Position numbers and translations under genes: made by a program. A stretch of 64,000 nucleotides of DNA from Octopus bimaculoides (lineage: Eukaryota), in contig NC_068984.1 in NCBI RefSeq assembly GCF_001194135.2, forward strand, positions 146,450,097 to 146,514,096, given 5' to 3'. This document shows, piece by piece, positions 1,212 to 48,576 of the stretch (the stretch's first letter is position 1; the number at the start of each line of letters is the position of its first letter). The notes below the pieces were generated by a model. The model saw nothing but the letters and a program-made list of their open reading frames with translations, ran no database searches and was not told the DNA's origin.

Positions 1212-2067
1212 CTAAATCCAAATAAATAAAATATTGTTACCTTTTTTTTTTCGGTGTAAGGTCCTTGTCTCCCCATTTCTAATCCCCTGTCCCTTTGCAC
1301 TTGCACCCTTATCCACCTACATTTTCTGATTCCTATGCATCATCATTTAGCACCCTTGTTCAATACTTATTTCTTTATTGCGCACAAGGAGCTAAACATA
1401 GAGGGGACAAACAAGCACAGACAAAGGGATGAAGTCGATTAGATTGACCCCAGTGCATAACTGGTACTTAATTTATCGACCCCAAAAGGCAAAGTCGACC
1501 TTGGCGGAATTTGAACTCAGAACGTAGCAGTAGATGAAATACTGCTAAGCCTTTTTGCCTGGCGTGTTAACCATTCTGCCAGCTGGCTGTCTTGTTCCAC
1601 ACTGGCAGGAGTTGGATGTTTTGATGGATCCAATGTATCTATGGACTGTATTGATCTCCAAAGTCTACCTTGGCATGGTTTCTATGGCTGGATGCCTTAC
1701 CTGATGCCAACCCTTGATAGCATGAACTGAATGCTTCTATGTGGCACTACGTCACCATGCAGTTCACATCTCCTCCTGTACTTTGAGGCTGTGCCATAAC
1801 CCCTTTTCCCCTTTTTCCAGGTGGGATACTCATATACATCCTCCACAGTAAGACCCCTGTTCCTGTTTCCCTATAATAGTTTATTTTATCCTCACCTGGT
1901 ACAAAGCCGTTGCTATCTCTACTACACCCTCCACTCAGTCAAGAGGGTTTGTCTTCCGAGTTATTTGGTGACCTCACCAGTGTTGGTGTCAGAACTAAAC
2001 CATCCATTTACACTCTGTAGAGTGGTTGGTTCCAGGAAAGGCATTTGCAGCCATAGAAACCATGTCA

Positions 2068-2505
<438 letters not shown>

Positions 2506-4902: not shown

Positions 4903-5324
4903 CTGCAACAAGAATTAAAGAAAAAATAATAATTAAATGACAATTAAGACTAATAACAATGTTTAATGAATGTTTCAAGTCAAGTTAAATTATTCCTATA
5001 GCATCTTTGTTGTTGGGGCACAGGAAATTTTTTATCAATTTTTTTTTCTACCTCTTTCAGTCTTGAGCTTTCTCTTCAAGCTGGCCAGATCTGATCTCTC
5101 ACACCTATCCTACAATGTCATTCTAAAAATAAAGAATCACATCATAGAAATCTTGAAACTAAGAGATAATGCATGATTAATTTAAATTAACGAGACTAAA
5201 TAAGCATTAAATCTGAGTAACCATTCTCATCATTTAACCTCCATTTGTCTATGTTTGTCTGGGTTGGAGAGTATTTTTGGTGCAGATTTTTTATAGCCAG
5301 ATGCCTTCTTGTCACCAACCTTAC

Positions 5325-5528
5325 CTTAATCGTGAAGATTCCTCATACTGTATTCTTCGTTGACTCTCCCGAGAATCTCCTGCCGTGTGGATGTTAGTCA
5401 CCAACTGTGAGCCATCACATTCCAATTTCTTTAATCGTTGACGACTCATTTCAATCTGCTGTACAGCTTTACTCATTTCCTCTTTGACATCTGTTGGAGG
5501 GGGTTCAACCTCATCTCCTTTTTTTGTA
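5325..5528 (-). CDS. DRC1: DRC1 coding exon 2
   Basis: TTACCAG| acceptor and AG|GTAAGG donor; 204 nt, phase 2-2; SRQRLKKLECDGSQLVTNIHTAGDSRESQRR resembles DRC1 [31 protein letters not shown]. Confidence 0.92.
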
Positions 5529-6322
5529 CTGGTAACGAAAAATAAAAAAAACAGAGGGAAATTAAATATTGTAATGCATACCCTTCTCCCCCCACATACA
5601 TATATGTACACAAATATTAACCCTTTTATTTTTCATTGCATATTTGCCCCTCGCACATGTCAATCTTTACAAAATCTTTCATAATCTTTTTCTCATTTTT
5701 CATTGAAAGTTGCCATATATATTTTCATTTAATTTAGTTCAAGCATAAAGTGGCAAAATCTGGCAGAACCATTCCCACTCCAGGCAGTATGCTTCGTGAC
5801 ATTTCGCCCCATCTTTTTGTTCTGAGGTCAACTTTACCTTTCAGGGGGTGGGGGAGATAAAATAATTACCAGTTGAGCATGGGGGGTGGGGTCGATGTAA
5901 TCGACTTGTCCCTTCCCCAAAATTACTGTCCTTGTGCCCTAATTTGAAACCAGTTTAGTCCTAGTATATATGCCCCTGGAGTGAGGTACAATATACATAT
6001 GAAAAGGGGTGTTTTCCAGTAAATACTGGTTGTGTAATCCAGTTCACTGTCATTGAAAGGCACGGAATCTTCTGATATGTCTGCAATAAACTGAAGACTT
6101 TTATGAGGCTTGTTTAAGTTGTCATAATACTGGGTTTCTTCATAAATTCTAACTCTGTCATCGAGTGCTTGATATCATTCTAAATTTATTTACAGAGCGA
6201 ATGAGTGTTATTAAACGAATAAAGGATATAAAGGAAAATTAGGCGTAACATAGGAGAAAAATTAAACAAATTGGCCATCAAATGTGTAAATATTATTTAG
6301 TGAACAGCAAAAAAACATTCGA

Positions 6323-10565: not shown

Positions 10566-12106
10566 TAGCAGCACCATTTCAGGGTTTTGAGGAAGGTTAT
10601 AATTGCACAAGGGGCAGTAAATGGTCAGTCGTAGTTGCATGTCCTTATTTTCAATTGACTTGTTAATTAGTTTATGACTAAATGCAATTAGGTAAAGTTT
10701 TGCTCATATTAAAAGAAGCATCCATCTAAACTCTTCCAGGTAACTATTGGATCTAAACGGTTATATCTAAATGTGAGGTGAAAGTGCTAATGCTTTTACT
10801 TAAGTATTTTACCTCATCTCACAGGTGTTTTTCTGTGTTGGATTGACTGAGACAAACCTTCAGTTCTTTGAATTACAGTTATTTCTACAATGTTTGAGAC
10901 TCTTTGTAAATTGGTTGCATTAACATCAAAGTATAAATGGCACATGTTATTAGTAAGCCAGAATGGGATTCATGAGTTATTTCATTTCTTTCATAATTCA
11001 TATAGAAATTTAACTAGGATGCACATCGAAAAAGGGGCTAGTCTAGCTGGATGGGATATTATCGCAAAACCTGTGGAGAAGGTCATATATAATAGACAAT
11101 TCAGTGAAAGGGGTCACTGGGTTATGAAAGGTTGTCAACGATTTAGCATTCAGACAACTCTATCAAATGTATTTATTAACATTTTGAATTTTTATGTTAG
11201 GTGATCCTTTGAGAATGTCCTATGGGCGACAGTTTGCTTAGTCTGGTTGAGGGCAACAAGGCTATCATTCACTTGTTATTGGTATTATGTTCTGTTTAAT
11301 CACGACACAGAATCCTTTGTAGTTTTTATACCTTGAAGTTGGGAGATGGGGTGGGGTTTGTGCAAATATTTTATTATAGAAGATGCTAAAGTCGTTGGCA
11401 AAGTGGATCTTGGTTGGTCAACATGTCAGTTATATTTTGTTGGTTTCAAAGTTTTGTACTTGTAACCTTTGACCTTGGCATTAAACTCTGACTGAACAGA
11501 GCTACAATAAAAATCATTCTGACCATTAAATTGTCTTCATTCATAGAGTACGGAGAAGTACATTGTCTAATGTCCTTACTTTTCAGCATGTAATTGGATG
11601 GACATTTGGTTGGTATTTGATTGACCACGTAGATACTCTCTTGATTTTTTTTGGCATAAGTGATAGATTGTTTGTCCATGTGGGGACCTCTCTTGCGGGC
11701 TTGGTGGCATACAAGGGCTTTCATGTAGTGAACAGATTTATTGTTCAATTGTGTTGTAAGAATGGAATTCACCTTAGGTGCATGGGAACTGAGTACCCTC
11801 ACTTCTTTGTAGGTGCACGAGACACAAGAACCAAGTTAAGTCGTTTTTGATCAGGGTCCAGGTGGGGTGTTATTTTAGAGAATTCTTTTCATATTTTATA
11901 TGATGTATACTCCACACCATTTTTATGGGCCAGTAGAAAGTGGTTGCAAGAGTGGCTGTACATGTTAGATGCAGATTCGTATAGAAAACTTGAATCCGTG
12001 CAAGGGGCGTGAATATTGTCGTGGGCGAGGAAGCTTTCCATTTTGTCTGCTGCTGATTGTCTTGTATTGCAGGATTAATGTTGTTATTGGTTCTCTTCTT
12101 TTCCAG

Positions 12107-12254
12107 GTTAGAGAATATGAATTGAGAAAGTCCAATTTCTCTGAGACTGGCAATTTTGGGTTTGGTATTCAAGAACACATTGATTTAGGAATTAAGTATG
12201 ATCCCAACATTGGTATCTATGGCATGGATTTCTACATTGTTCTTGGCCGACCTG
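12107..12254 (+). CDS. RPL11: RPL11 exon 4
   Basis: [49 protein letters not shown]. Confidence 0.97.
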
Positions 12255-12579
12255 GTAAGTAGTTCTTTATAAAGTCATTGGAAAACCAATCCCAACATTG
12301 TTAAATTTTTCATCATTCTTCTTTGGATAAGTCACGCCATTTTATACTTGATCCTAACTTAAAAATTGGGGTACGACTTCTACAAGTTGTACTTTGTATT
12401 TTCAAAGGGCCAACCTTGTCACATTCGGTGTCATGCTGAATCTCCCTGAGAACTACGTTTAAGGTACACTTTGTCTGTGGAGTTCTCAGCCGCTTCTATG
12501 TTAATTTCACGAGCAAGCTGTTCTGTTGCTCGGATCAACTGGAGCACTTTGTCATCACAGAGTGCCAGTTTTTTTATTC

Positions 12580-26322: not shown

Positions 26323-27389
26323 CACTTTCATTAGTTTAGAATGTGTGTTAAGTTATGGACATTTTAGGGTGGTCTTGTAGAATGTGTGAAGACGCGTGAT
26401 CCAGTGGTTGGGGTGTTGCACTCACGATCGCATGTTTGTTGTTTCGATTCCCGGACCGGGCGGCGTGTTGTGTTCTTAAACGAAACACTTCATTTAACAT
26501 AGCTCCAGTCCACTCAGCTGTCAATGGGTGCACCCCGAAACGGGTTGGCTTCTCGTTCAGGAGCAAAATGGCATTCGTCTCATCCATTTATACACCATGG
26601 AAACCAGCCAACCAACCTAATTATGAGTCCTAGGAGTTGAGGAGGAGGAATGTCCAGGGACCATTTATATAATGTGAGTTTGCGTATTATGATCGAGGAT
26701 CCATGTTCGATCTTGCTGTATGGCATCTGGGGGCAACGATCATTTTCTATCGCCTCGGGTCGACCCATACTTTCCAAGTGGAATCAGGTTAACAAAAACT
26801 GTGCAGAAGCTCGCCGGATGTATTGTAATTGAAAAGGTGGTTCTGCATGAGAATTGCATTAAGAGTACACAGATCTGAGGAATACACAGCCACATTTACA
26901 CTAATGGTTGTAGTAATTTGATTTGTCTAATAAATGAAAATTGTTGGTCAAAAATTCTAACCGAGATCCATTTTCTGCAATATGGTTTGGTTTGGTGTAA
27001 AATATGAAAGTGTTCAGATCCCTGCGCTGAGAGTCTTTAAAAGCAAATGTGGATAGAATAGAATGGTGGGATAAGATTAACGTTAATCCAGGATACATGC
27101 GAAATAGAGAGAGGGGGACGACAACCTATTCTTTACACAACGGTGCACATGCATATCACATTTGCATTCCTTTCAAGTAGAATTTAACTTGTTAATTGGT
27201 CTAAAGATATTCAGAAATAAACATAGATATTTGTTCAACTGTGATAGAACGGAATATATTGCGAATGGTGTTTAATACGGTCCAAATGAATACTTTTTTC
27301 TTAGTTTATGTTACAAGAAAATATTTCTTTTCAGATTTATTATTTCGAATTAATTTTTCTTTAATCGTACAAACATTAGAAGCAGAAAT

Positions 27390-27806
27390 TCATTTTACTC
27401 TGGAAGAGAGAGAAAGTTTGTTGATGTAGTCGGTGATAGCCTTGCGAGACCCAACAGTGTTCTGGAGATAGGCATTATACGAAGCTAAGAGATTAGCTCT
27501 GTTGGATGGATGCACTTCCTTTAAACGTTTCACTTCCTGTCTATAGAAGTCCTTTTCTCTCTGTTTCCAGTCATCGCCGACTTTCTTCTGTGAATTCGTT
27601 TTCTGTTTGCGGATGAGTTCTTTCCTGTAAATAATCAATAACTTATTTAAGACACACAACAAACAATGCTTTTTTTTTTGTTGTTCAACGCCATCGAAGG
27701 GCCATTCTAGCCATTGTAAGGGCATTGTTTTTCATAAAGCTATTTTTTTTAGTAGATTAAATTGACAAGAAGCTTCTTTTTCTAAAGCCAGTTACCTAGT
27801 TTCCAT
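27390..27806 (-). CDS. Candidate 81-aa uncharacterised protein (exons 27806-27796 and 27624-27390)
   Basis: ATG GAA ACT AG|GTAACT, a 171-nt intron, then TTTACAG|G; METRKELIRKQK...EKDFYRQEVKRLKE...NLLASYNAYLQNTVGSRKAITDYINKLSLSSRVK; phases match; in-frame stop upstream of the ATG. Confidence 0.6.
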
Positions 27807-27812
27807 GGCAAC
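27799..27812. promoter_or_regulatory. Perfect RFX X-box overlapping a start codon
   Basis: GTTTCCATGGCAAC = GTTNCCATGGNAAC consensus. Confidence 0.7.
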
Positions 27813-28773
27813 AAGTAACCGACATCACAATATTCCACCTGGTCAGTAGCCAGCCGGCTTCAAGGCCAGTAATTTTGAGGGGCGGGGGTCTTAGTCGATT
27901 ACATCGACTCCAGTACTTGACTCGTCCTTTATTTTATAGACTCTGAAGGGATGAAAAGGATTTCCCCCCCATCTCTTTATGTTCTGAGTTCAAATCCATT
28001 CCAAGCGATTTGAACACAAAACCTAAAGAGATGCCGCTGATGATTCCGCCAGTTGGTTGCTTTATGGTTTAATATTAATAACATTTTTACTCGAGGGTTA
28101 CATACATATATGGATTATTATTAATGGTAGTAACGAGTCACATAAATCATTTAGTCACGAAAAAACAGCCGACGGAAGTCACATTGGTGGAGGTCATCCT
28201 ATCGCCAAGTTTTCGTTGCTCAAATCCAAGTCAGCCTCGAACGACATGTTTGATAAATTATTAGTTTTAATTTAATTCAAAACGTTCTAATCCTGCCGTG
28301 GTCAATTTTACTTTTCATCTTTCCGGCACCAATAAAACAAAATACCAGTTAAGTAATAGTGGGTTTTTTGCCATTTACTGTACCCCACACCACACTACAC
28401 AAAAAAAAGAAAGTTTGGCCTTCTGTCTGTTTAAGAAATCTGACTAAATTTAATGTTCCATTTTTAACGAAGTGGATGAGTTTGGCACTTTTTACCAAGT
28501 AAATCAATTCCAGACTCAATTTTAGAGACACAGACCCACATATCATTCTGAATTTGCAGTCTCGCATGAAATAAAGTTTTTCTTTCTCTGGTCTTAAATA
28601 ATGGCTGTGTCTAAGTATCTACTCTCTCTCTCTCTCCCTCTCTCTCTCACTTTCTCTCTTTCTCTTTCACTTCCTTTGTGTCCCTCTCCTCTTCCGCTTT
28701 TGATTTAACAATGTATCTATGTATCTATCTACTTCTTTTGCGATGAACGCCGTCACCACTCACTGTCTCTTTC

Positions 28774-28816
<43 letters not shown>

Positions 28817-29370
28817 TTCAATCTCTCTCTCTCTCTCACTGTTTCTCTCTCTCACTCTCTTTCACTCTCTTTCTCTCTCTCTTAGGTCCACTGAAACATT
28901 TAGACAAAACGAACGCCGTCACCACTCACTGTCTCTTTCTCTCTCTTTCACTCACTCTCTTTCTCTCTCTTTCACTCACTCTCTTTCTCTCTCACCCCCT
29001 TTTCTCTCTTTCTCTCTTTCTCTCTTACTTCCTCTCTGTCCTCCTCTCTCTCGAAGTCTGACACACAACACATCTACGTACAAAAACAAAATGTTAGCGT
29101 ATTAATATTATTGATAATCCAGTCGAGGAATTTTCCGTGAATTCCTGCAAATAAAAGACGCCATGGTCATCTTGTGACTAGTTTTGGTCAAAGACCTTTT
29201 GATCAGAGGCAACCAGATTCAAATAACAACTGTATAGAATTCTGATTTGAAATCAATAAATTTAACTTGGGACGAAAAAAAAAAAAAAAAAAAGCATGCG
29301 AATTTCGTACATCTTTTTTCTCTAATTTGAAATTCTAATTTATGACCCCGCCAAAAAAANNNNNNNNNNC

Positions 29371-29770
29371 AGGCGTGGCTGTGTGGGAAGTAGCTTGCTT
29401 ACCAATCACATGGTTCCGGGTTCAGTCCCACTGCGTGGTAACTTGGGCAAGTGTCTTCTTCTATTGCCTCGGGCCGACCAAAGCCTTGTGAGTGGATTTG
29501 ATAGACGGAGACTGGAAGAAGCCCGTCGTATATATGTATATATATATATGTGTGTATGTGTGTGTGTGTATATATGTTTGTGTTTGTCCCCCCAACATCG
29601 CTTGACAACCGATGCTGGTGTGTTTACGTCCCCGTAACTTAGCGGTTCGGCAAAGAGACCGATAGAATAAGTACTAGGCTTACAAAGAATAAGTCCTGGG
29701 GTTGATTTGCTCGACTAAAGGCGGTGCTCCAGCATGGCCACAGTCAAATGACTGAAGCAAAATATAAAGA
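29371..29770 (+). mobile_element. tRNA-derived SINE with an internal microsatellite
   Basis: A/B-box head GGCGTGGCTGTGTGG...GGTTCAGTCCC; homologous copies at 54520-54895 (+) and 52790-53220 (-). Confidence 0.8.
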
Positions 29771-29853
29771 ATAAAAGACTAAAATGGTTGTCTCAAATAA
29801 CTGCAAACATCAGGGAAAAGACGCAAGTTTGAATTAAATTTAGTATGACTGAG

Positions 29854-30054
29854 TTATTTCCCTTCAATCATTCTGTCGTTTTTGTTTAAACTCTTAACAA
29901 AACTTAACTCATTTTCATATCGTTTTTCAATTCTCTTGATTGTCTTGGAAGGTATTTCCGGTAGAATTAAAGTGTCAAGCTTTAAGTCTTCTGTTGGGTC
30001 ACACAAACCAGTGGCTGTTTGGCGGCTCCGATAGCTCGGGAAAGGAGCTTGTGG
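29854..30054 (-). CDS. Giant-exon gene: candidate last coding exon
   Basis: TTTTCCAG| acceptor; only phase 0 stays open: PQAPFPSYRSRQTATGLCDPTEDLKLDTLILPEIPSK...GK*; the chained model totals 9621 nt = 3206 aa + stop. Confidence 0.6.
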   Translation of the reverse strand, partial: PQAPFPSYRSRQTATGLCDPTEDLKLDTLILPEIPSKTIKRIEKRYENELSFVKSLNKNDRMIEGK

Positions 30055-31500: not shown

Positions 31501-32628
31501 CCGACGAATACAGTAATTAGAAAAGAAGATCTCAGCTTAACCACAATACTCTGCGGACAAATACAATGAAAAGCAGAAGAGTTTGTCTTACTTGTCTCAT
31601 CATATACCGCACCAAGCTTGTATCGTAGTAGGGCTTCAAAGAAGAGAACACATACGGTTGGTACTGGACTCTAGCGAAGCGATGAGAAAACGGAAAAAGA
31701 AAATAGAAGTTTGTAAATTAAATTAACATTTCAAACACGCAGCGTAATTCAGAAGTGACTTTCGTACTTAAATGAGATATAAAACTATTTTACTGTTTCA
31801 GTTTTTTTTTTCATATTATCTTTGTTATTTTGTTATGAATACATACATACATACATACATACATACATACATACACGTACATGCACACGCACATCCATGC
31901 ATGCATGCATGCATGCATGCATGCATGCATACATACATACATACATACATACATACATACATACATGCATACATATAAAACCCCTTTGAATGACCAGCAC
32001 ATGGAATCTATGACTCTATACTATCCATTTGTAATCACAAAATATGAACTCCTATCAGAATCTACATACCATGGACAGGAAGCCTTCCTACCCATTCTAC
32101 CGACACACCGCTTTCCTTGGATAATGGAACTCCAACTGTAACATCCCACATATATCTTTATTTCTATTCTCTTATTTCCCTTTATCCTTCCTATCTCCAT
32201 TCTTTTCCAAAACAACTCCTTATAGAGAACTCTATTAATTCCCTCTACTATTTCTACTATATATAAATATATCTGTCACATACCTGCGATAAATATAAGA
32301 TATAGGATATAGATAAGATAAATAAATCTCTATAAAGAGCATGGATACATACAACATACGAAGTGAACCCATCCACACACACACAAACACAAACACAAGA
32401 AATTTCATGGACGGCCACATGAATGTGAAGAACACGTTTAACACCGACAGCAGCTGCGGCGGTGACGACGATGGCAACAGCAACAACAACAACAACTACC
32501 ACGATGGCAACAACGTGGGCGAACACACAGACACAGAGGAATACAGGGACAGCAGCAACAGAATGGGGCTGAGGGGAAGGCCACACTTCTGTTAAAAGCT
32601 ATGACACACACACAAACATACACACACA

Positions 32629-33358: not shown

Positions 33359-33440
33359 TGTGGCGGTTTGGAAATCTTCGACGCTGTTTCTTGAAGGATT
33401 TTTTCCAGTTCTTTGAACTCTTGGAAATATCTTGGGTTGA
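33359..33440 (-). CDS. Giant-exon gene: downstream 82-nt exon
   Basis: TTCTTTTAACAG| acceptor and CA|GTAAGT donor; the phase-1 reading gives VNPRYFQEFKELEKILQETASKISKPP. Confidence 0.65.
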
Positions 33441-33863: not shown

Positions 33864-36800
33864 TCAGACACTACTGTGCTTTTTTTTTTTTTTTTCTCTA
33901 GTGTGCTCTACCATCCAATCTTGCAATGTGCTGGCGCAGTGTGGCATGCTATAAATGACAGTTTTACCTTTACCAAAAGACTTTGATTTTGATTTAGACG
34001 AAGGATTCTTGGGTTGTTTACGAAGCTTTAAGATAAACATTTCAGATTTTGTTTCTTTCGTCAAACAGGTTTTTTTAATTTTCACTTTTTTCCTCAGAAA
34101 ACATTTTCTATGGTATTCTCCAATATTATCTTCATTATCCGACGTAGACCCCGCCGAATCGTTGGACCTGACCAAAGTTTTCAGCAGTTTCTCTTTCAAC
34201 AAATTATCATTTTCCGAGTCAGTCTGTTGCTTTTTTATGCTTCTTTGTGAAATTGTTTTCATATTATTAACGAAAACATGTTCTTTTCCTTTACGAAAAA
34301 GCAGATGGTTGCTCGAATCGACTGCGTTTGTTTTCTTTTTTTTAGCAGACGACATTCCAGTAGAGGTTCTTTTCTTATTGACGACCAAATCTTTATTCAG
34401 TGAAGTTAGATATCGGTTGCGTATACAATTGCACTTGTTGTTCCTGCAATTATTTTGATTAAAAGTGTTTAGTTTGGAACCATTAAAATGTTTCGCTTTA
34501 CTGCTTTTATGCGGATGCATATGTGCCGGAGTGAAGGTATTTGTTGGCGACAGGCTGTTTAACTGAGTTGATAAAGGTCCCTTCGAAGAATCTGTACCAT
34601 GTGAATCAGTAAAGTCTTTCGAAGATGATTTGCTATCAGTAGCATTCTTGGAGTTATTTTTCGGTGATAATGGTGAGCTGGGAGTGAGTTCTTGGAATGA
34701 AGAACCTACGAGGTTTGGTAATTTATCGCTCTTGTATAACGACGGTAAACCATGATAATACACTTCAGCGTCTTTCATAGCCGTACATGAAAGGGAATTT
34801 GTTTCGTCATCAACCTTCAAACAAGTGTTTCTGTTAATACATGTTTCAATTTCTGTTGCCAATCCTTCATCGATAGGATCAACAACCGACATATTTCTTT
34901 GTCTGGCCATTTCGATTTGAGTCTCAACGTTTTGGTTCGCTGTCATAGTTTTATCATTTGGATTCGTTTTACAGCTGGGAACAACATACTTTTGGTTTAT
35001 TGATGATTTCGTCGACACTGTAGCTATTGACGGCATATTCTTCGATTTGAATTTCGCTTTACCATTTCGTGTGTGACTTTCAGGCATTTTAGAGTCGTTA
35101 TCGGAAATATTCCTTCGTTTTTTCATTTCTGATTCTGATACACTTGAACCGATTTTTGGTAAAAAGGATGAATTACTTTTCACACAATTCCTACATTTCG
35201 CATTTTTAATATGACAATCTTTGGTACTTAATTGTTTATTGCTGATCGATGTCTGAATTGTATCGATTGGCTTAGAAAAGGCGATGCTACACTTGTTTTT
35301 ATCTGATATCGCATATGTGTTTGCGATGTTATTCGACGTGTTTGAAATGGCGAGTTTCTCCATCTCCCCGTCGGTTGCCGTCTTACGGTTTGGAATATTG
35401 CTTCTCGGTTTATCCAGTTTCGTAGCGTTTTCTACATCGCTCGGATTCTTTCTAACTTGTAAATTATTTTTACCATATTTTGAATGACTAGCATCACTAC
35501 TTTGAAATACTTTGCTACGAACTTTGGTCGTCTGCCCTAGTGTTTGAGAGTTTTCATTGTTATTTGTTGTAGATCTGGGAGATTTCAGAGGTAATGTGGC
35601 CCTGTCATTCGATATATTCTTACAGGGTGCTGCAACCATTATAGGTTTTCTGTCAGTTTGTTCATAAGGTTTAGCAAAGTAATTCCTTGTTTCATTCTTA
35701 ATGTGATCTGTTGCTGCAGTCTTTTTATTTTCAGGGTTATTTTCTTGAAACGGACTACAAGACGTATATTTTGTAGATTGACTGAAACTTTTTTTACGTT
35801 CAAAAATGTTTGGTAATTTCCCACCAGAGACAGTTTTTGATTGTTGTTGATTTGGTTGTTGCCGTTGTTGTCCATTTGTTTTAGTTACACTGGTCATATA
35901 TTCCGACTGCTTTTCGTTTGTTTGCTCATCTGGTATTTCCTTTGCTTCTTCACATTTTGTTGGAACAGCTGTGTCTTTATTTAACTCCGGACTACTATTC
36001 CCTGATGTAGAATTCGAAGAGTTTATAACTATAGTTCCCAAAGGGTTTAGAATAGAACTGAAACTATAGGCGAAGCTGTTCTCTGACAGCATGGGGAATG
36101 TGTTCGTTTCAATAATTTGATCCAAAATTTCTTTATCGAAATTAAATTTAGAGCTATTCGCCTCGTTATGGGATATTTGTAATATTTCCTTCTTTTCCAC
36201 GACTTCTTTCATTGAAGTGTTTTCATGACCGGAAGTAGAAACATTTCTGTGAACTGATATAATAGTTGATTTTTTAGTATCGCAAATATTTGAGATTCCA
36301 TTACTGCTATCAGCGCCATCTGCTCGGTTTTGTACTGTATTCACCCAAATGTGCTCCACAATATCCGGTTTTTCTGTTACACATTCATCCAACGGAACAG
36401 AATCATCGGCCTGAGTGGATGTTTTTCTTGTAATTGTCTTTAAGATATTTCCAAAATCATTTTGGACATTTCCTGATGTAATTTCGCTGTTTTGTTTCTC
36501 TGGGTTCGAAACGTTAATACGAAGAGTGTTACAAGAAGCAGAATCTCCTTCGATGTTTCTGCCTGTTGCTGTTTCGTTTGTGTTATGTTTTACCTCATCT
36601 TTAGCGACAGCAAACGGCTCCCCTTTTGTATTTTCATCAACGGTAAACTGTCTTGTAATATTTGGCGGATTTACATCTGCGTTCTCTGTAGACTGGATGG
36701 TAACTATGTTTGATGGTATACCATTAACTGCATCATGCAACGCTTGCGATTTGGTGTTCGAATCACACACGTTTCGGTTTCCATTTGGAAGAGATCGATT

Positions 36801-39800
36801 GGTGTCAATCAATACAGATTCGATTGTAATTTTGGTCTTTGAATCAGAAATAACTTTTGCTTGCTTTGTTTCTGAAACTTTTTCATTTTGATTAGTATCG
36901 AACTGGCAATTCAACCCCTGTATTGAAGGATTATTGATTTCTTCAGTTTCTTCTTCATTCCCATTAGAAGTCTGCATAACAGTTGAGTTCTGAGTATTGT
37001 TGCCAGGAGATTCAGTTGGACAATTCCTTTCTGATACAACTCCAGAATTCGATGCTTCTTGCACTTTTTCTTCGCTAGAAATTTTCAGCATTTCTTCAAT
37101 GCCATTTGAATGATTCTTCTTATAAACTTTAAGTTTACCATTTACATTTTGTCCTAGTTCGATCGTATTTTGTTCTGATATTTCATAAATTTTTTCAGCC
37201 TTTTTCGCTGTCACGACGGCAACTAATCTTTCTTTTTGTTCAAAAATCTTCTCTGAAATAGTCTCAGGGAATTCTTGTAATGGTTTCCCCTCCGAAACTG
37301 TCTTAAAACAGAGGCTGTTTTGATCTTGGTCGTTGATAGACGCATTACGAGTGTCATTGTCATCGTTTTGTTCTTTAATAAAGTCAGAGATGTTCACCAA
37401 CAGCTTCTCAGTCGTATTGTTTGCCATTTTCAGTTGCGCTTGTTGTATTGTATTTTTCTGAATATAACATGTGTTATCACCGACGTTTATTGCAAGACAT
37501 GTTACATAGTCTTTTACACCAATTCTTGTTTTAGAGACATTTGTAATGTCCATTTTAACCAAATCCAAGCAATTTTCTACGGTTTTGTGGAATGGCGTAA
37601 CTTTGGAAGAGTTCCTGGCACTATCTAACATTTCGGGCGACGTACTCGTTGCTTTCGTATTTTTATACATTTCTGTACAATGGCTTCTAAACGCTTTTTC
37701 TATTGGATCGTTGTTAGTGTTAACGAAATTATAACCAATCCCTATCAAATCACTAGGTTTCGGATAGCTGATGTTTGCAACATTTTCCATGATATATCTT
37801 GCTAAATTTTCTTGTATGTACGCAATATCTTCGTTTCCTTCACGATCACGACAGTGGTGTGTGGTTGCAACATCATCCAGTGAAATGGTAATGGAATTTT
37901 GTCTAGACTTCGCTGTTTTGGTGTTTGATAATGAAAAATTAATATCTTTTGTCCTACATGCAACTTCTGTAGAAATATTCCTCGTATCACCGACTGGAAA
38001 TGTGGTGACGTCATTGTCTGCGATGGCTGAACACTTTGTGTTATTTGCAGAACCTTCCTCATATTTCATCACATACTTGTTCGATGCGATATTACTTGAT
38101 AAGGCGGCTGCATTTGTTAACGGAACTGTTGGCACATCAATGTCTGAGGCGACACATTTTCCTGCATTACCGTTCGATACGGCATTAATTGAAGAGCAAA
38201 CACGTGAAATGTTATTATTCGTCCTAATATCGTTCGATACGACGCTGCTAGAGGCGACACTTGAGTTACTATCGTCTGATTGGACGTTATTTACGAAGGT
38301 ATCACGTGATGCGACATCTCCGCTCGAGATGGTGCCGTTTGATACAGTAATACTATTTAATGAATCGCTATTTGATACAGTATTGTCAGATATATCAAAA
38401 ACTATATTTTTGTCTACATTTGATGACTCGACCGAGTTATACAGAGCAACGTCTGTCGGGTTAATCTTTAATTTTGTTGGCAGACTGTTTGGTAACTCCA
38501 CAACGCTAGTCTTTTCTTTTCCGCCATCATTACTTTCAGGTTCAAAATAACTAAACTCCTTCTCTTTTGAACTTTCATTTTGCCCTGTGTTCAAAGTAAG
38601 TTGAGATTCTTCACGATCTTTTCTCGCTGCTTCTTCTTCCAAAAGGTTGCTGGTATCTTTAACTATTATCTTACTGGTTACAGTTTGCATTGTGTTTTTC
38701 TCGGGAAATGTTTTGATTGGTTCCTCACCAATTGATTCCATGTCCCCCTTTATTTTGCTTTCTTTACAAAAAATCTCTTCTTCTCCAATACAACCATCGA
38801 CTAAAGAATACGGCATACTTTCAATAATGTACGCTAGGGGATCATAGAAAAAATTGTCGACACCAAAATTGTTCTGGTTACAAGTTATTTTGTCAACGAC
38901 CGAAGCAGCAATTAAATCATTATCTATAACAACAGCGTCTTTCAACTGTTCTGCTGATAGGTTTTGCGAACTATTTAACGAAATGACGCCGCTAGCTGAA
39001 TCGGTTTCCGTGGTACAAAAGGAAGCTTTAATCTTCTCTGGCAAATCTGAAGAGGTTAAGTTTTCAGTTAAAACCACATCATTCATTTGATTTGGTCGTA
39101 TATAACTTGTAATGCCGTCTGCTCGTTCGCTGTATATATTCACCTCTTCTTCGTCAAACTGGACTCTGATATCTCTTCTACGATGGCCACCGTCTCCATT
39201 TCCGTTCATACCGTATTTACCGCTAATAAAACCGCAAACTCTCTTCGTGATCGAACAGCGTTCCTGACCGGTTAATTTACCTTCGATTCGCAGGGAAGTA
39301 TTCGAATTCTCCTCTCGGAATCCACTTTCACCAATAGGACCAGAGGAAGGGGATAACAGTTCCTTTTGAAGGGAAATTCTATAATTTGTCATCTTCGGTA
39401 AAGACTTACTTTTGTCTGTTTCTATTAGCTTGTTGTCCATTTCTTCAATTGAGAAATATGCAAATCGTGGTATCTCGAAAGTAAATTCCTCTGAGCGTTT
39501 ATTCCTCGCAAGTCGCTCGTTCGACTCATTATTCTTGACGTTTGAACTTCGATCGTCAATAAAACCGAAAGAATTGGTGCTATTTTGTCGTTTTACCGAA
39601 GTAGCAACATTGGTTTCTTCATTTTCTTCTACACTAATTTTTGTCTGGGTTTTCTGTGCATATTTCGCAGATAAATCGCCACAGTTTTTATCTCCGTTGC
39701 CGTCGTTAGATATAGATTTATAATTTTTATCCAAATTCGAACCAGACGTACTTATGTGACCGTTGTCTCTGCTTATTGCATCATTTGAAACATCCGAGGA

Positions 39801-42800
39801 ACTTGTACGACTTGTCTCAGCATCCACTACGTCAGAGAATGCTAAACGATTAGTTCCACTTCCAATCATATCGGTTAATGCAAACAAAACCCCCGCTTTC
39901 TTCAACGTGTAACTTTCATCAAAGACTTTTGTAGCTGAGGTATCTTTTTTCGATACGGTTTCTTTTGTCATTGGTTTTAAAGCATCGTCTGCATTTTCTA
40001 GTTGAAGTACCTTACTGCCGTCTTTTGCTGTTGCATCACTGGTTTCGAAATTTGAAGACACAGTTCCATCTTTGAAAACTTCCTCTTTCTCTGTTTGTAC
40101 TAACGACCCGTTATTATCGGTCAAATTCTTCAACTTGTCTTCTGGCGAAATACTAACGATGTATCCTGGTTTGCATTCTGCTCGATTTTCTAGTTTACAA
40201 GCATATGGGTTAATCGTTCCTTCTTTTATTTCATTATTATTTTCCAGGCTGGCCTTCGAATTATTCGAAAATTGGCATTTTGAAGAATTTGATGTTTCTA
40301 TCAGCTTACAACCCAAGAGAGAAATAATATCCCTCAGTTTGGTCTTTTCAAATGCGAAAATGGGAACATTGATTTTTTTAGTCTTGCATGGATCTCCGCT
40401 AGAATCCGTTTCGTTTCTCGCGTCTTTGTCAGCGAAGCATGCAGTTTCGTCAGATTCTGGCAAGTCAGAACGAATGCTTTTGTCATTAGTTGTAAGACCA
40501 TCATTGAGAATATCCTGGGACGTTGTAATCATTTCATATTTACTACTCAAATTTTCAGGTAGTCTTTTGGTTAGATTTTGTTCAGAATTTCTGTTAATGA
40601 GAATGTTAATTGTCCCAGGGGTAGAACTACTGGGTAACGAACCTGTATCGTTTTCTTTTGTAATGTCGAGAATATTTTCCTTTTTGCTTATCAATGGACA
40701 TTTTAAAGAACTATTTGTTTGAATTATTTCTGATCCTAACGGAAGCATTTCTTGATCGAATCCAGCAAAGGATTCTTTTCTTATAGCAAAGCTATCGATT
40801 TTCGAAACTGGCCCTGTAGCACATCCAGTTGTCTTTTGGTTAATATTCGTGTTGGAATTATTACCGTTCAAAAGCTCAATGTTAACACCACAATCATATT
40901 TAGGTTCGCCGTTTTCTAACGAAAGTTTGTTACTGTTTGAGATGATATCGCACGATTTAGAAAAACATTTTGGAAGCAACAACAAATTGTTTCCTTCCAC
41001 GTTAAGAGAAATCTTTTCTTTAATCTCAAGAGTGTTATCGGCATCACTTGCCTGTAACGTCACAGCTGGAACCTTTGAACTCTTTTGGATGCTGTTTGTT
41101 TGATAGGGATTTCGAACTAAGTCTACACTCGGACTACAAGGCAACATTTTTGGTATAAATAACTCATCACCGATTGGGAACTTAACTGAAATAGCCGTTT
41201 TATCAAACGATTCAGGCGTTTGTTGCTGGTGTTGTTCTTGTGATACTTGTTCAACACAAGGAAAACTATCCTTTATTTTCGCAGTATCTTTGCTTGACAT
41301 TATTTCCATGGAAGACTCACTGTTTCCATTCGAGTATTTTATAAAATTTGGATGTTCTGAACTGACCACGTGATATTTCGGATGTGAATTTTTCTGGCAT
41401 ATTACAGGAACTCTATTTTGCTCAGACAGACACTTGGTTCTGTCATCGAGCTGCAAGTCGGGATTGGCTTTTATAAAAACATAAGTAACACATTTCTTTG
41501 TATTTTCACCGGATAATTTACCCCCTTCGGTGTTTGTAAGCTCTTCTTCGTCCATGCATGTTTTACTGTCATTTTCAGGATCGTTAATGCAATTAATTTC
41601 TTTTGGGAGCTTTTCTATGTATTTTGTTTCGTTTCGTTTTGTTTTTGATGTGCTCTTCATTGTAATTGGAGAGGACATTGCTAAACAGTCATTAGAATTG
41701 TTTTGTGATGGATTCCCCACAATAACTGGCTTACCATCACCATTTAGTATTGTAGCTTCATTGAAAAGGATATCGCTTTCTCTTTGTTGTACATTTTCGC
41801 TGTTTTTATGTGAATTTTCATCATTATTCATTATCTCCGCTGACGCGTCATCTTCATTTTTCTCTTTTGAAACATCTGCGATATTAGTTTGAACTTGTTC
41901 GCTGTTTTCTTTTAATGTTTCGCTAGTTACAACATCGCTGTTATATTTTGGTGAATTTTGGTTTGTGTTTTTTCCTTGATCATCGATCGATCCACGAGGA
42001 ATTCCAGCTACTATATCGTTTTGTTTTCTAACAAAACTTTTCCCAGAACGTTTGTTTGCACCAGAAGCATTATTTTCCAGTTTTAAAATAACTTTGTTGC
42101 TCCACCGAGACAACAACATTTTTAATCCTACACCTAATTTGTTAATCGACCTCGACTTATCCAAATTGCTTTCCGAACAACCGTTCGTTAGTTCTGGAAT
42201 CACTTCTTTCCTCACAACCTCGGAATCTTTATCGATTTTTTTCGCAGGCACCTCTTTATTAGCAACGCTATTTTCCTCACTCAAATTCTCAGCATCTTCG
42301 TTTATGCTTTCGCTTGATTTCGTGTCGTTTTTCACTGATAACGTCTCTTTATAAAGTGTTTGTTCCAGTTTCACAGATCGAACTTTGTAGATATCGAACT
42401 TGCCTTGTGGATACCCACCTATCTCACACAATTTCTCCGATTCTGCACTGAAATGATTGAGGATCGAAGTCGGATTCGGACCAATAACATTTAGTCTTTC
42501 TTGTGATGTACTCGGCATTATAACACCACAGTACTGCAGTCTGTCACTGGATTCGCTAATATTTGAATCAATATTCACATCGAAGTTCATCTGCATCAGA
42601 TGTGACTGAAGTTGTTGGTTCTGTAATAAGCCATTAGTGCCAGCATCGATCTCTTTCGTATCCTCGATTTCCAAGTAGGAATTGATGTTCTTCAGAGTTA
42701 TCATCGAATTGGCATCGGCTTTGAAGACACTTGGACTAGCAATCACTCTTGCTCCTGATTTCAAATCGCCGTTAGCAAAAGAACTGTTTCTTTTTCTGCA

Positions 42801-43165
42801 TGCCGCTTCCAGGTGTGATTGCAGCAACTGCAATCTTGTCACTTGATATGAAGGTGTAAGGACCGGGTTCTTTAGCAATTCAGCCAGGTCAGTATGTTTG
42901 AAATTGGCCATTGATAAAGCTGTGGACTTGGATTCCTTCAACTCATCGTTGGCATTATTTTCCACCTTGAGACTGTAATCGACATTAGTCTTTGGAGTTG
43001 CTTCGTTTCGTTCAGGTGTTACAACAACAAGAGGAGTCGCAACAGGTACTGCTGCAGCAGAAGCATTATGAGTGTTATCAACAACCGTTGCAGTGTTGCC
43101 GTTGATTGCCTTCTGGTCTGACCCCTGACCGCTGCCGGACGTGTTGCTAACGACTTCTTTGTTTG
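33864..43165 (-). CDS. Giant ~9.2-9.3-kb coding exon; S/N/K/E/T-rich, probably largely disordered uncharacterised protein
   Basis: Stop-free frame of ~3100 codons in AT-rich DNA. The frame extends upstream of the ORF-track GTG to an acceptor AAAAG|CA at 43165, with an in-frame TGA just 5' of it. Phase-1 donors G|GTAAAG (33974) and AAG|GTAAAA (33968) lie near the end; otherwise the stop is at 33864. Confidence 0.88.
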
Positions 43166-45289
43166 CTTTTATTGGTAAGGGTCATTAAAAAGAAAGGAAA
43201 AAGTAATTTAAACGAGAAATTAAGAACAACATCAAAACTAAATTTTCACAACATTTTACAATTGCATCAACAACAATAACAACAACTCTAATTCTTTCTA
43301 ATTTTGGCACAAGGCCATCAAATTTGAGGGGAGGGACGGTCGATTGCAACGACCCAATGCTCGACAGATACTTATTTCATCGAACCCGAAAGGATGAAAG
43401 GCAAAGTCGACCTCGGTAGAAATTGAACTGAGAACGTAAAGAGCTGGAAGAAATGCCGCTAAGAATTATGTCTGGTGCTCTACCGATTCTGCCAGCTCAT
43501 CGCCTTAACAACTCTACAAAGAACGCGCTCATTTTTATATCATTTCCCTGTTTACGCCGGGGGAGGGGGGGGGAGAAACTGACAACTTTAAATGGTCAAT
43601 GCTTCTAAATGACCAACTACTTTACTTTAGGGAAAATTCACAATGCCATGGATAGAAATCTGAGGCAAAATCAACGTGATATACAGTAGAATCCTTCTGA
43701 CAGGCTTCATTACAGTTTCCGTCTACCCAATTTTACTCACAAGATATGGGCCGATTCAAGGTTATAGAAAAATGCATTTACTCAAGATATTACGCAGTGG
43801 GATCGAACCGTCGACCTCGGGTTTGCGAAGTGGACTTCTTAACCATTCGACCATACTGCACCTGCAAAGTTTAACTGGCGCTCGCAAGTGAGTCTGTCCC
43901 AATAGCTTGTACCTCGTTTTCGTTGATTATTTTGTATGCTTGTGTTGTATCTCGGTTCTCTCAGTCTTGATCCAGCGGAACATAGGAACGGCATAACAAA
44001 GAAAGGGAGAGTAAAGCTACACCATCCCTCATCACTAAGGTGGTACTTCTTTACAGCTGAGCAGAGTAAAGCAATGTGAAATGAAGTGTTTTGCCCAAGA
44101 ACACAACACATCACCCCATCCAGGTATCGAAACCACACTCTTACGATCACGAGCAAAACCCTAGCCACTAAGCCACACGGCGCTACATGAAGCATATTAT
44201 TAGTCCGTTATATGCAGAACTGGATTAGAATGGCCAAAGTCGACTTTGATAGCATTTGAACTGAGAACTGCGTTATTCGTCGGGAGGTAATATCTCTTAC
44301 GGATGAGCTGCGTTTAAAACACACAATATACGTAGGAAACATCATGTATTTTACATTAAATGTTAAACATAGATGATCATTTTAATCTATTATTGCTTCT
44401 GTTGCATATAACGAATTTTTATTCAGCTAGGCGGTTCTTTGCAACATCAGTGATTGTTCATTAACTGTTTTCTTATATCGGTGGCGAGAGATTTCGTTTT
44501 ACTATGCGATTGGCTGTGGGTACACACCACTAACAATGTCCAACTGGGTACAAATGCTGCATTCAGTATTCCCATCAGCCACTGCTTGGACGATTTTGGT
44601 CTTCTGATATATATATTGTATTTTTGAACATTGTACGTCCATAAGAGGTATCACCTCAGGACGAATACTAAAATAAATTTGCTTTTCGCTGTGTTCACAT
44701 TGTGTATGACACACAGATGGCCATATTATTAGTTTATAAAACCAGTCTTTCTCAATGGAGGGAGAGCCAAAAAAATATGGATCCGACTGGAGAGAAGTAG
44801 AAAAGGCAGCCCAGAATTGAGAAAAGTCGTCGATGGCCTCTGCTTCAAAGGGTACGAAATTCTTACAGAAAAAAAGCCACTAAATTGCCAGGATCGCAAC
44901 CTTCAAATGTTAGCGGCCACAGGCCTGAGTAAGAAAAGAATTTGATAAACTATAAAATTTCGGTGAGCTGAGGCCATTTTGAAAAATCGATTCTGTGTTG
45001 AAGTTATTTCACGCCATTGACCATGTTTATAGTGTTGAGGAAAGTTTTGGAAAGAAAGCAAAAGAAAGTCCCTTGGACATTATTGTCTCGAGTCTTCGGA
45101 CTCATAAGACCAGTTACCCGGTTTCCATGGAATCTCTTGGAAAAATAGCACAGAGCAAACACCGAGGGATTTGGGAAATGGATAGTTTTGTGTTTTTCTT
45201 TCCTTTACTGTTGGTGATGTAAGTCATCGTCTGCAAATTGACAGAATGCTTAGTACATCGTATAGAATGCTTTGCAAGGTTTGTCAAAC

Positions 45290-48500: not shown

Positions 48501-48576
48501 CAAAACTGGAACTGGACACGAGTTTAGACTGATGTTTTCCATCTTCATTGGAAACTGGTTTGGAAGAAGATTCCAT
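48501..48576 (-). CDS. Giant-exon gene: upstream coding exon (MESSSKPVSNEDGKHQSKLVSSSSF)
   Basis: Strong TTTACAG| acceptor and TTG|GTAAGA donor; its phase-1 end matches the giant exon acceptor; may contain the start ATG. Confidence 0.6.

Follow-up and report, generated by a model that had tools for sequence, protein, structure and literature searches.

ALMS1 and CEP295, two centrosomal proteins encoded with giant exons, carry a short conserved motif, the ALMS motif, at the C-terminus. LOC106884259, a gene of Octopus bimaculoides, resembles them in having a huge low-complexity exon together with small exons that encode a helical C-terminal motif. It lies on the minus strand of the stretch analyzed here, 64,000 nucleotides (nt) of contig NC_068984.1 (assembly GCF_001194135.2, positions 146,450,097 to 146,514,096 of the forward strand), referred to below as the window. 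A second point of comparison is the X-box found in promoters of RFX/DAF-19 target genes, which has the C. elegans consensus GTHNYY AT RRNAAC and is typically found no more than a few hundred bp before the ATG (bioRxiv 10.1101/2020.08.21.260547). An X-box-like palindrome is present in the last intron of LOC106884259, and a first-pass annotation of the window had combined it with the exon that follows into an independent, RFX-driven ciliary microprotein of 81 amino acids (aa). That exon, 27624-27390 on the minus strand, is with high confidence the last coding exon of the already annotated LOC106884259 and not a separate ciliary microprotein. It is an ordinary, annotated exon that adds no new gene and is present in the RefSeq models of two octopus species.

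The product of LOC106884259, XP_014791026.2 ("uncharacterized protein"), is 3,271 residues long and is encoded by six coding exons spanning 48576-27390 of the window on the minus strand. The features of the locus are:

48576..48501, minus strand: coding exon 1, whose ATG (48576-48574) comes right after an AG acceptor
43165..33968, minus strand: coding exon 2, the giant exon (9,198 nt), with a Ser/Asn/Lys-rich low-complexity product
33440..33359, minus strand: coding exon 3, 82 nt, VNPRYFQEFKELEKILQETASKISKPPQ, where the conserved C-terminal module begins; its donor is phase 2
31670..31592, minus strand: coding exon 4, 79 nt, VQYQPYVFSSLKPYYDTSLVRYMMRQ
30054..29909, minus strand: coding exon 5, PQAPFPSYRSRQTATGLCDP...KRIEKRYEN + GA, whose donor feeds the 27624 acceptor
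29908..27625, minus strand: last intron, 2,284 nt, phase 2, with donor GA/GTTAAG and acceptor tttacAG/G; it holds the palindrome and a repeat copy
27863..27956, unstranded: short interspersed repeat copy, just upstream of the palindrome
27828..27821, minus strand: 8-mer GTGATGTC, the same letters as the "S-D-V" codons at the end of the penultimate exon in a squid-like transcript; a possible, weak exon relic
27812..27799, both strands: X-box-like palindrome (minus GTTGCCATGGAAAC, plus GTTTCCATGGCAAC), 175 nt ahead of the last exon
27806..27796, minus strand: hypothetical "exon 1", ATGGAAACTAG, 11 nt, followed by donor-like GTAACT; its use is unsupported and no gene is called
27624..27390, minus strand: coding exon 6, the last ("exon 2" of the microprotein), 235 nt including TGA at 27392-27390, encoding residues 3194-3271, (E)KELIRKQ...NKLSLSSRVK and stop
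27341..27336, minus strand: AATAAA hexamer, 49 nt past the stop, which fits a terminal exon

Splicing of the six window exons at GT/AG sites gives the exact translation of XP_014791026.2. The exon borders were sought as GT/AG sites in small ranges around tblastn matches, and one solution gives the RefSeq protein. Residues 3194-3271 of XP_014791026.2 map to 27626-27393 by tblastn. In an exhaustive HMMER search the exon peptide (77 aa) matched at 100% over residues 1-77 to positions 1720-1796 of A0A0L8I421, an O. bimaculoides protein that is the earlier RefSeq version XP_014791026.1 and shares its 90% cluster with XP_014791026.2. The gene range called in GCA_001194135.2, 21,187 nt, equals 48576-27390, and that annotation has no other gene called within it, last intron included. 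The true partner of the 27624 acceptor is the phase-2 donor AAATGA/gttaag at 29909/29908; the split codon GA/G is Glu3194, and the last exon supplies the final 78 residues. As a fallback, the first-pass annotation had considered the exon an alternative last exon of the upstream giant-exon gene. It does belong to that gene, and through a phase-2 donor in the range named (29854-30054), but it is the last coding exon and not an alternative one. The other donor named, at 33359, is indeed phase 2 and is the donor of exon 3. Since the ATG at 48576 adjoins an AG acceptor, the gene has one or more non-coding 5' exons before it.

The orthologue in O. sinensis, LOC115211134 (XP_036358208.1/XP_036358209.1, also "uncharacterized protein"), has the same exon structure. 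The upstream 9.1-kb open reading frame (ORF) at 33864-42965 on the minus strand is 93% identical to it. Isoforms X1 and X2 end ...TIKRIEKQYKKE-KELIRKQKANSQKK...AYLQNSVGSRKAITDYINKLSLSSRIK, matching the window exon (KRIEKQYKKE/KELIRKQK...NKLSLSSRIK), and the O. sinensis models splice the orthologous exon in the same way. The last intron is likewise without a called gene in the O. sinensis assembly annotation. The ratio of nonsynonymous to synonymous substitution rates (dN/dS) of the exon between the two octopuses is 0.21, falling to 0.09 in the motif half; values this low indicate that the frame of the exon is real and under constraint. The orthologous last exon is translated in isoforms X1 and X2, and X3 and X4 stop before it. 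The latter two (P0002, P0003) omit the 79-nt exon 4, which shifts the frame and brings a stop in exon 5, so that the last exon is not translated; these transcripts are likely substrates of nonsense-mediated decay. At the other end of the small exons, tandem donors TTTG/GTAAAG/GTAAAA, 6 nt apart, end the giant exon (33968-33975, minus strand) and probably explain the 2-aa isoform differences KSF(GK/GN)VNP of both species. A literature search on LOC106884259 and LOC115211134 found nothing.

The sequence elements from which the microprotein was built are all present. The minus strand reads ...ggttacttGTTGCCATGGAAACTAG/GTAACTgg..., with GTTGCCATGGAAAC at 27812..27799, an ATG at 27806-27804, GAA ACT AG, and GT at 27795-27794. 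The 171-nt gap (27795-27625) is there, its pyrimidine-rich stretch ending ...gattatttacAG at 27625 (tttacAG), as is the 235-nt open exon 27624-27390 with its TGA at 27392-27390. The conceptual splice from 27796 to 27624 gives an 81-aa METRKELIRKQ...ITDYINKLSLSSRVK followed by a stop. The independent protein itself is not supported: the exon is the annotated terminus of LOC106884259, and in homologues the motif ends longer proteins. No LOC106884259 or LOC115211134 model includes the hypothetical first exon of 11 nt. The 171-nt "intron" is the final part of the last intron, whose full length is 2,284 nt, and the ATGGAAACTAG/GT "first exon" would be a coincidental reading of the X-box-like palindrome, which would have no coding role.

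The last intron holds 28 combinations of an ATG, an open frame and a phase-2 GT, and only the one proposed for the microprotein has a 7/9 donor. Shuffled introns have a mean of 1.75 combinations with a 7/9 donor, and 76% of them have at least one (donor 7/9 or better). Because an equal combination occurs in that share of shuffled introns, the ATG/GT arrangement is not special. The homology check did find homologues of the exon peptide, yet no stand-alone small one among the HMMER matches; those of less than 130 aa have intron-like starts or are truncated fragments. The short matches (83-158 aa) open with polypyrimidine-tract-like residues running into (R)KEL or QEL. These intron-like starts indicate that the matches are ORF calls spanning the terminal exon and do not represent small proteins. 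An unspliced 111-aa ORF, 27725-27390, was considered separately as a product and rejected; O. sinensis has no in-frame ATG there, and it is not on record.

The exhaustive HMMER search gave 65 homologues of the exon peptide at E <= 1e-3, 13 of them at E <= 1e-10. A word-index protein search had found no homologue, which was a false negative, as the O. sinensis proteins have long stretches identical to the peptide. The exon motif, DFYRxE..L.EVHP.NR....Y.AYLQNT.GS.KA, is C-terminal in the complete homologue models examined (about 230-2,025 aa), where it follows a second conserved block. Together these form a module of ~185-240 residues, mostly helical, whose first half comes from exons 3-5 in octopus and whose second half comes from the last exon. 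A module profile search gave 26 matches (E 1e-104 to 1e-47). Family members are found in gastropods, bivalves, cephalopods, Branchiostoma and the rotifer Adineta; they include Patella caerulea SNE40_006221, Biomphalaria LOC106079368, Pecten maximus LOC117316654, Haliotis XP_067667859.1, Branchiostoma Hypp7898 and Adineta A0A819GTD3, in which the module follows a PLAT domain. The two-part module was seen in Branchiostoma lanceolatum (P0066) and in the bdelloid rotifer Adineta steineri (P0071). In a squid-like transcript contig, L002 (944 nt; P0008, 255 aa), both halves are in one mRNA.

Octopus shares with the family block 1, FFKEEL..L...P..Y.PY.F.SLEPYY.T..RYL....SR.TA.GL.DP, block 2, DFYRMELD.L.EVHP.NR....Y.AYLQNTPGS.KA, the C-terminal position of the module and the phase-2 intron before the last exon. 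The octopus motif is divergent, with NAYLQNTVGS and a W for Y in DDW. It also differs in its N-terminus, where a single giant exon encodes a disordered extension of ~3,000 residues; many family members have just 250-400 aa. Exon 2 (9.2 kb) codes for ~3,066 low-complexity residues, many other mollusc homologues being only 250-400 aa in all, and N-terminal extensions within the family range from none to ~3,000 residues. The penultimate exons of other molluscs end ...DVPMLR (Patella), ...DVPTLR (Biomphalaria) and ...GVPTFR (Pecten). Before the last exon an Arg codon is split, CG/ in Patella and AG/ in Biomphalaria and Pecten, and is followed by GTAAG (GTAAA in Pecten). ORF-call fragments of homologues show the same boundary before (R/E)KEL. 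Since the phase-2 intron is shared by Patella, Biomphalaria and Pecten, the intron before the last exon is ancient.

Pfam searches of 12 homologues gave no family for the module, the only domain found being PLAT in the rotifer N-terminus, and Pfam searches of the 81-aa product and of the 213-aa C-terminus gave no module match. As judged from these sequence comparisons, the family is an uncharacterised bilaterian one that reaches beyond molluscs and has no Pfam model. An AlphaFold2 model of the 185-aa module, made with a 26-sequence alignment, is helical and non-globular (predicted local distance difference test 71.6, predicted template modelling score 0.32). Foldseek comparison of this model with the PDB gave nothing at E < 2. 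The elongated helical prediction and the position at the end of long disordered tails suggest that the module may serve as a helical protein-protein docking module that ends such tails. The sole match of a PDB profile search, to RFXANK ankyrin repeats (E = 2.6e-4, 66 positions), was rejected as spurious, there being no Pfam Ank match and no Foldseek ankyrin fold. In the same search, axoneme structures included, no axonemal protein matched the module, and the searches of this analysis gave no evidence tying it to cilia. An ALMS-motif protein was also rejected; neither the 81-aa product nor the 213-aa C-terminus has a Pfam ALMS_motif match at E <= 10.

The palindrome was described by the first-pass annotation as a perfect X-box. 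It does fit the nematode consensus GTHNYYATRRNAAC; it matches the ideal GTTGCCATGGCAAC at 13/14 positions, and on either strand one position keeps it from fitting the vertebrate-type consensus GTNRCCNNRGYAAC. Counting both strands, GTHNYYATRRNAAC has one site in the window, with 0.54 expected, and GTTNCCATGGNAAC had 0 occurrences in 100 shuffles. The palindrome is rare and is not noise at the scale of a 64-kb window. It lies 20.8 kb downstream of the host start codon (48576), inside the last intron and not in a proximal promoter, and a window search found no site within two mismatches of it near the first coding exon. It is kept in O. sinensis at L001:32339-32352; the alignment of the two species breaks at the repeat copy (27863..27956), O. 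sinensis having ~200 nt extra that are absent from the window. The 226 nt preceding the last exon showed unremarkable RNA folding (z = -1.26). Around the palindrome extends a longer, imperfect one, GGTTACTTGTTGCC AT GGAAACTAGGTAAC (27785-27830), in which the donor-like GGTAAC mirrors GGTTAC; the left arm in O. sinensis is GCTTAC. A weaker X-box-like element, GTTTCCATGGAATC, is found at 45121-45134 in the first coding intron of LOC106884259 and has two mismatches to the motif at 27812-27799.

Several observations weigh against taking the exon as the gene terminus alone and the palindrome as sequence of no coding role. The RefSeq models behind the gene structure are computational predictions. 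The ATG is in good Kozak context (GCCATGG), and both it and the GT are kept in O. sinensis. The window has two sites with no more than one mismatch to GTTGCCATGGCAAC, compared with 0.0 per window in 200 shuffles. A 49-nt block around the palindrome is identical to O. sinensis at 47/49 positions, compared with 82% in mid-intron and 91% in the exon, an excess in conservation that is not significant (p ~0.07, estimated from identity counts). Transcription that also starts inside the last intron would likewise count against it and is highly improbable.

On balance, the palindrome seems to be chance or relic sequence. That it is instead a genuine, non-coding RFX site, either an enhancer of LOC106884259 within its intron or a distal element for the neighboring gene DRC1, is a credible though less favored possibility. 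The relevant neighboring features are:

~6995-6846, 5321-5611 and 2065-2505, minus strand: DRC1 exons, from the ATG exon and PDB matches
11969-12262 (L006:40126-41187), plus strand: exon of ribosomal protein L11/uL5 (RPL11), Pfam Ribosomal_L5_C, E = 2e-12

The ATG at 6995-6993 opens the DRC1 exon MDSTAGG...DSDDPEERILARRLRIERTIE, and the ORF pieces 5321-5611 and 2065-2505 match PDB chains of dynein regulatory complex protein 1 (E 2.5e-16 to 1e-9). A near-ideal X-box, GTTGCCATGCCAAC, lies at 7033-7020 on the minus strand, 25 nt upstream of this ATG, and looks like the promoter-proximal X-box of a motile-cilia gene. The DRC1 promoter is 20.8 kb downstream of the intronic palindrome on the same strand, with RPL11 between DRC1 and LOC106884259. 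An Rfam search of the whole window gave no match. The palindrome resembles the described promoter X-boxes in its fit to the nematode consensus and in its 13/14 quality, which is that of the DRC1 site; it differs in being intronic, whereas 25 nt separate the DRC1 site from the ATG downstream of it.

A regulatory role is consistent with the 13/14 match to the ideal palindrome, of which ~0 are expected per window, with the 96% identity of the local block to O. sinensis as against 82% in mid-intron, and with the presence in the window of a motile-cilia gene that has its own promoter X-box. Conserved X-box instances outside promoters are also common in vertebrate genomes. However, the conservation excess falls short of significance, and extrapolation from base composition gives ~250 chance sites per ~2.7 Gb genome, from which this one was picked for its motif. 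A scan of the Patella, Biomphalaria and Pecten loci, each together with 5 kb on either side, gave no site that differs from the ideal palindrome at two positions or fewer; the sole consensus match in the three is the degenerate GTTTTCATAATAAC at Pecten L005:5389. Nor is there evidence that links the host family to cilia, no axoneme protein in the PDB matching it.

A different origin for the same letters is suggested by an exon that octopuses lack. Both Octopus species are without the segment ...EGSTRLPKFPVV...LFYSDVPxLR (STRLPKFPVV...), a segment found in most of the other members. Other molluscs encode it in an exon of its own, symmetric and flanked by phase-2 introns, so that its loss keeps the frame. 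It is present in the squid-like L002, Patella L003:8922-9060, Biomphalaria L004:26761-26892 and Pecten L005:19285-19407. The palindrome and GT could thus be the decayed 3' end of this ancestral penultimate exon (...STRLPKFPVV...LFYSDVPxLR, xG/GTAAG), lost in frame, a reading that is unlikely. It has in its favor that Octopus lacks exactly the symmetric exon that the squid-like transcript, Patella, Biomphalaria and Pecten have kept, that the exon there closes with an Arg codon split in phase 2, GTAAG or GTAAA following, and that the pseudo-donor shares AG/ in phase 2. In addition, GTGATGTC at 27828-27821, 25 nt before the AG/GT, equals the squid codons AGT GAT GTC (Ser-Asp-Val), and Patella AGT GAT GTT shares the first seven bases. 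Against it, the similarity consists of the 8-mer plus CCA only, and a match as good as the 8-mer has an empirical p of ~0.03. The upstream frame is closed by a TGA. Searches of the octopus intron for the missing exon by tblastn and blastn gave chance-level matches only, and tblastn found none of the rest of the exon; a 10-mer match elsewhere lay in a repeat copy and is probably chance.

Least tenable is an internal RFX-driven promoter in the last intron giving a short transcript that starts translation at ATG 27806 inside the X-box and encodes an 81-aa, motif-only protein. If true, LOC106884259 would contain a nested microprotein isoform under shared regulation with motile-cilia genes, the neighboring DRC1 among them, and the start codon would be unusually embedded in a transcription-factor site. 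The rarity of the near-ideal palindrome, the Kozak-like ATG with a 7/9 donor in correct phase, the retention of ATG and GT in O. sinensis and the DRC1 X-box, which at only 25 nt from its ATG shows that X-boxes can adjoin start codons here, all speak for it. It is nevertheless very improbable, as the exon is wholly explained as the LOC106884259 terminus, no small stand-alone homologue is found and the short database matches start with intron-derived residues, the intron has no called gene in either octopus assembly, 76% of shuffled introns hold an equally good ATG and donor, the O. sinensis conservation is uninformative with introns ~90% identical between the species, strong X-boxes are lacking at the Patella, Biomphalaria and Pecten loci, which have just the one degenerate match at Pecten L005:5389, and a start codon within the binding site of the factor would need transcription to start upstream of the X-box.

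As the last coding exon of LOC106884259, the exon 27624-27390 encodes the second half of a C-terminal module conserved in bilaterians, for which there is no Pfam model or known function; this module is of modest residual value. The in-frame loss of a symmetric module exon in octopus has a similar, modest residual value. The near-ideal X-box in the last intron, 20.8 kb from the DRC1 promoter X-box, may provide a cephalopod test case for promoter versus distal RFX sites.

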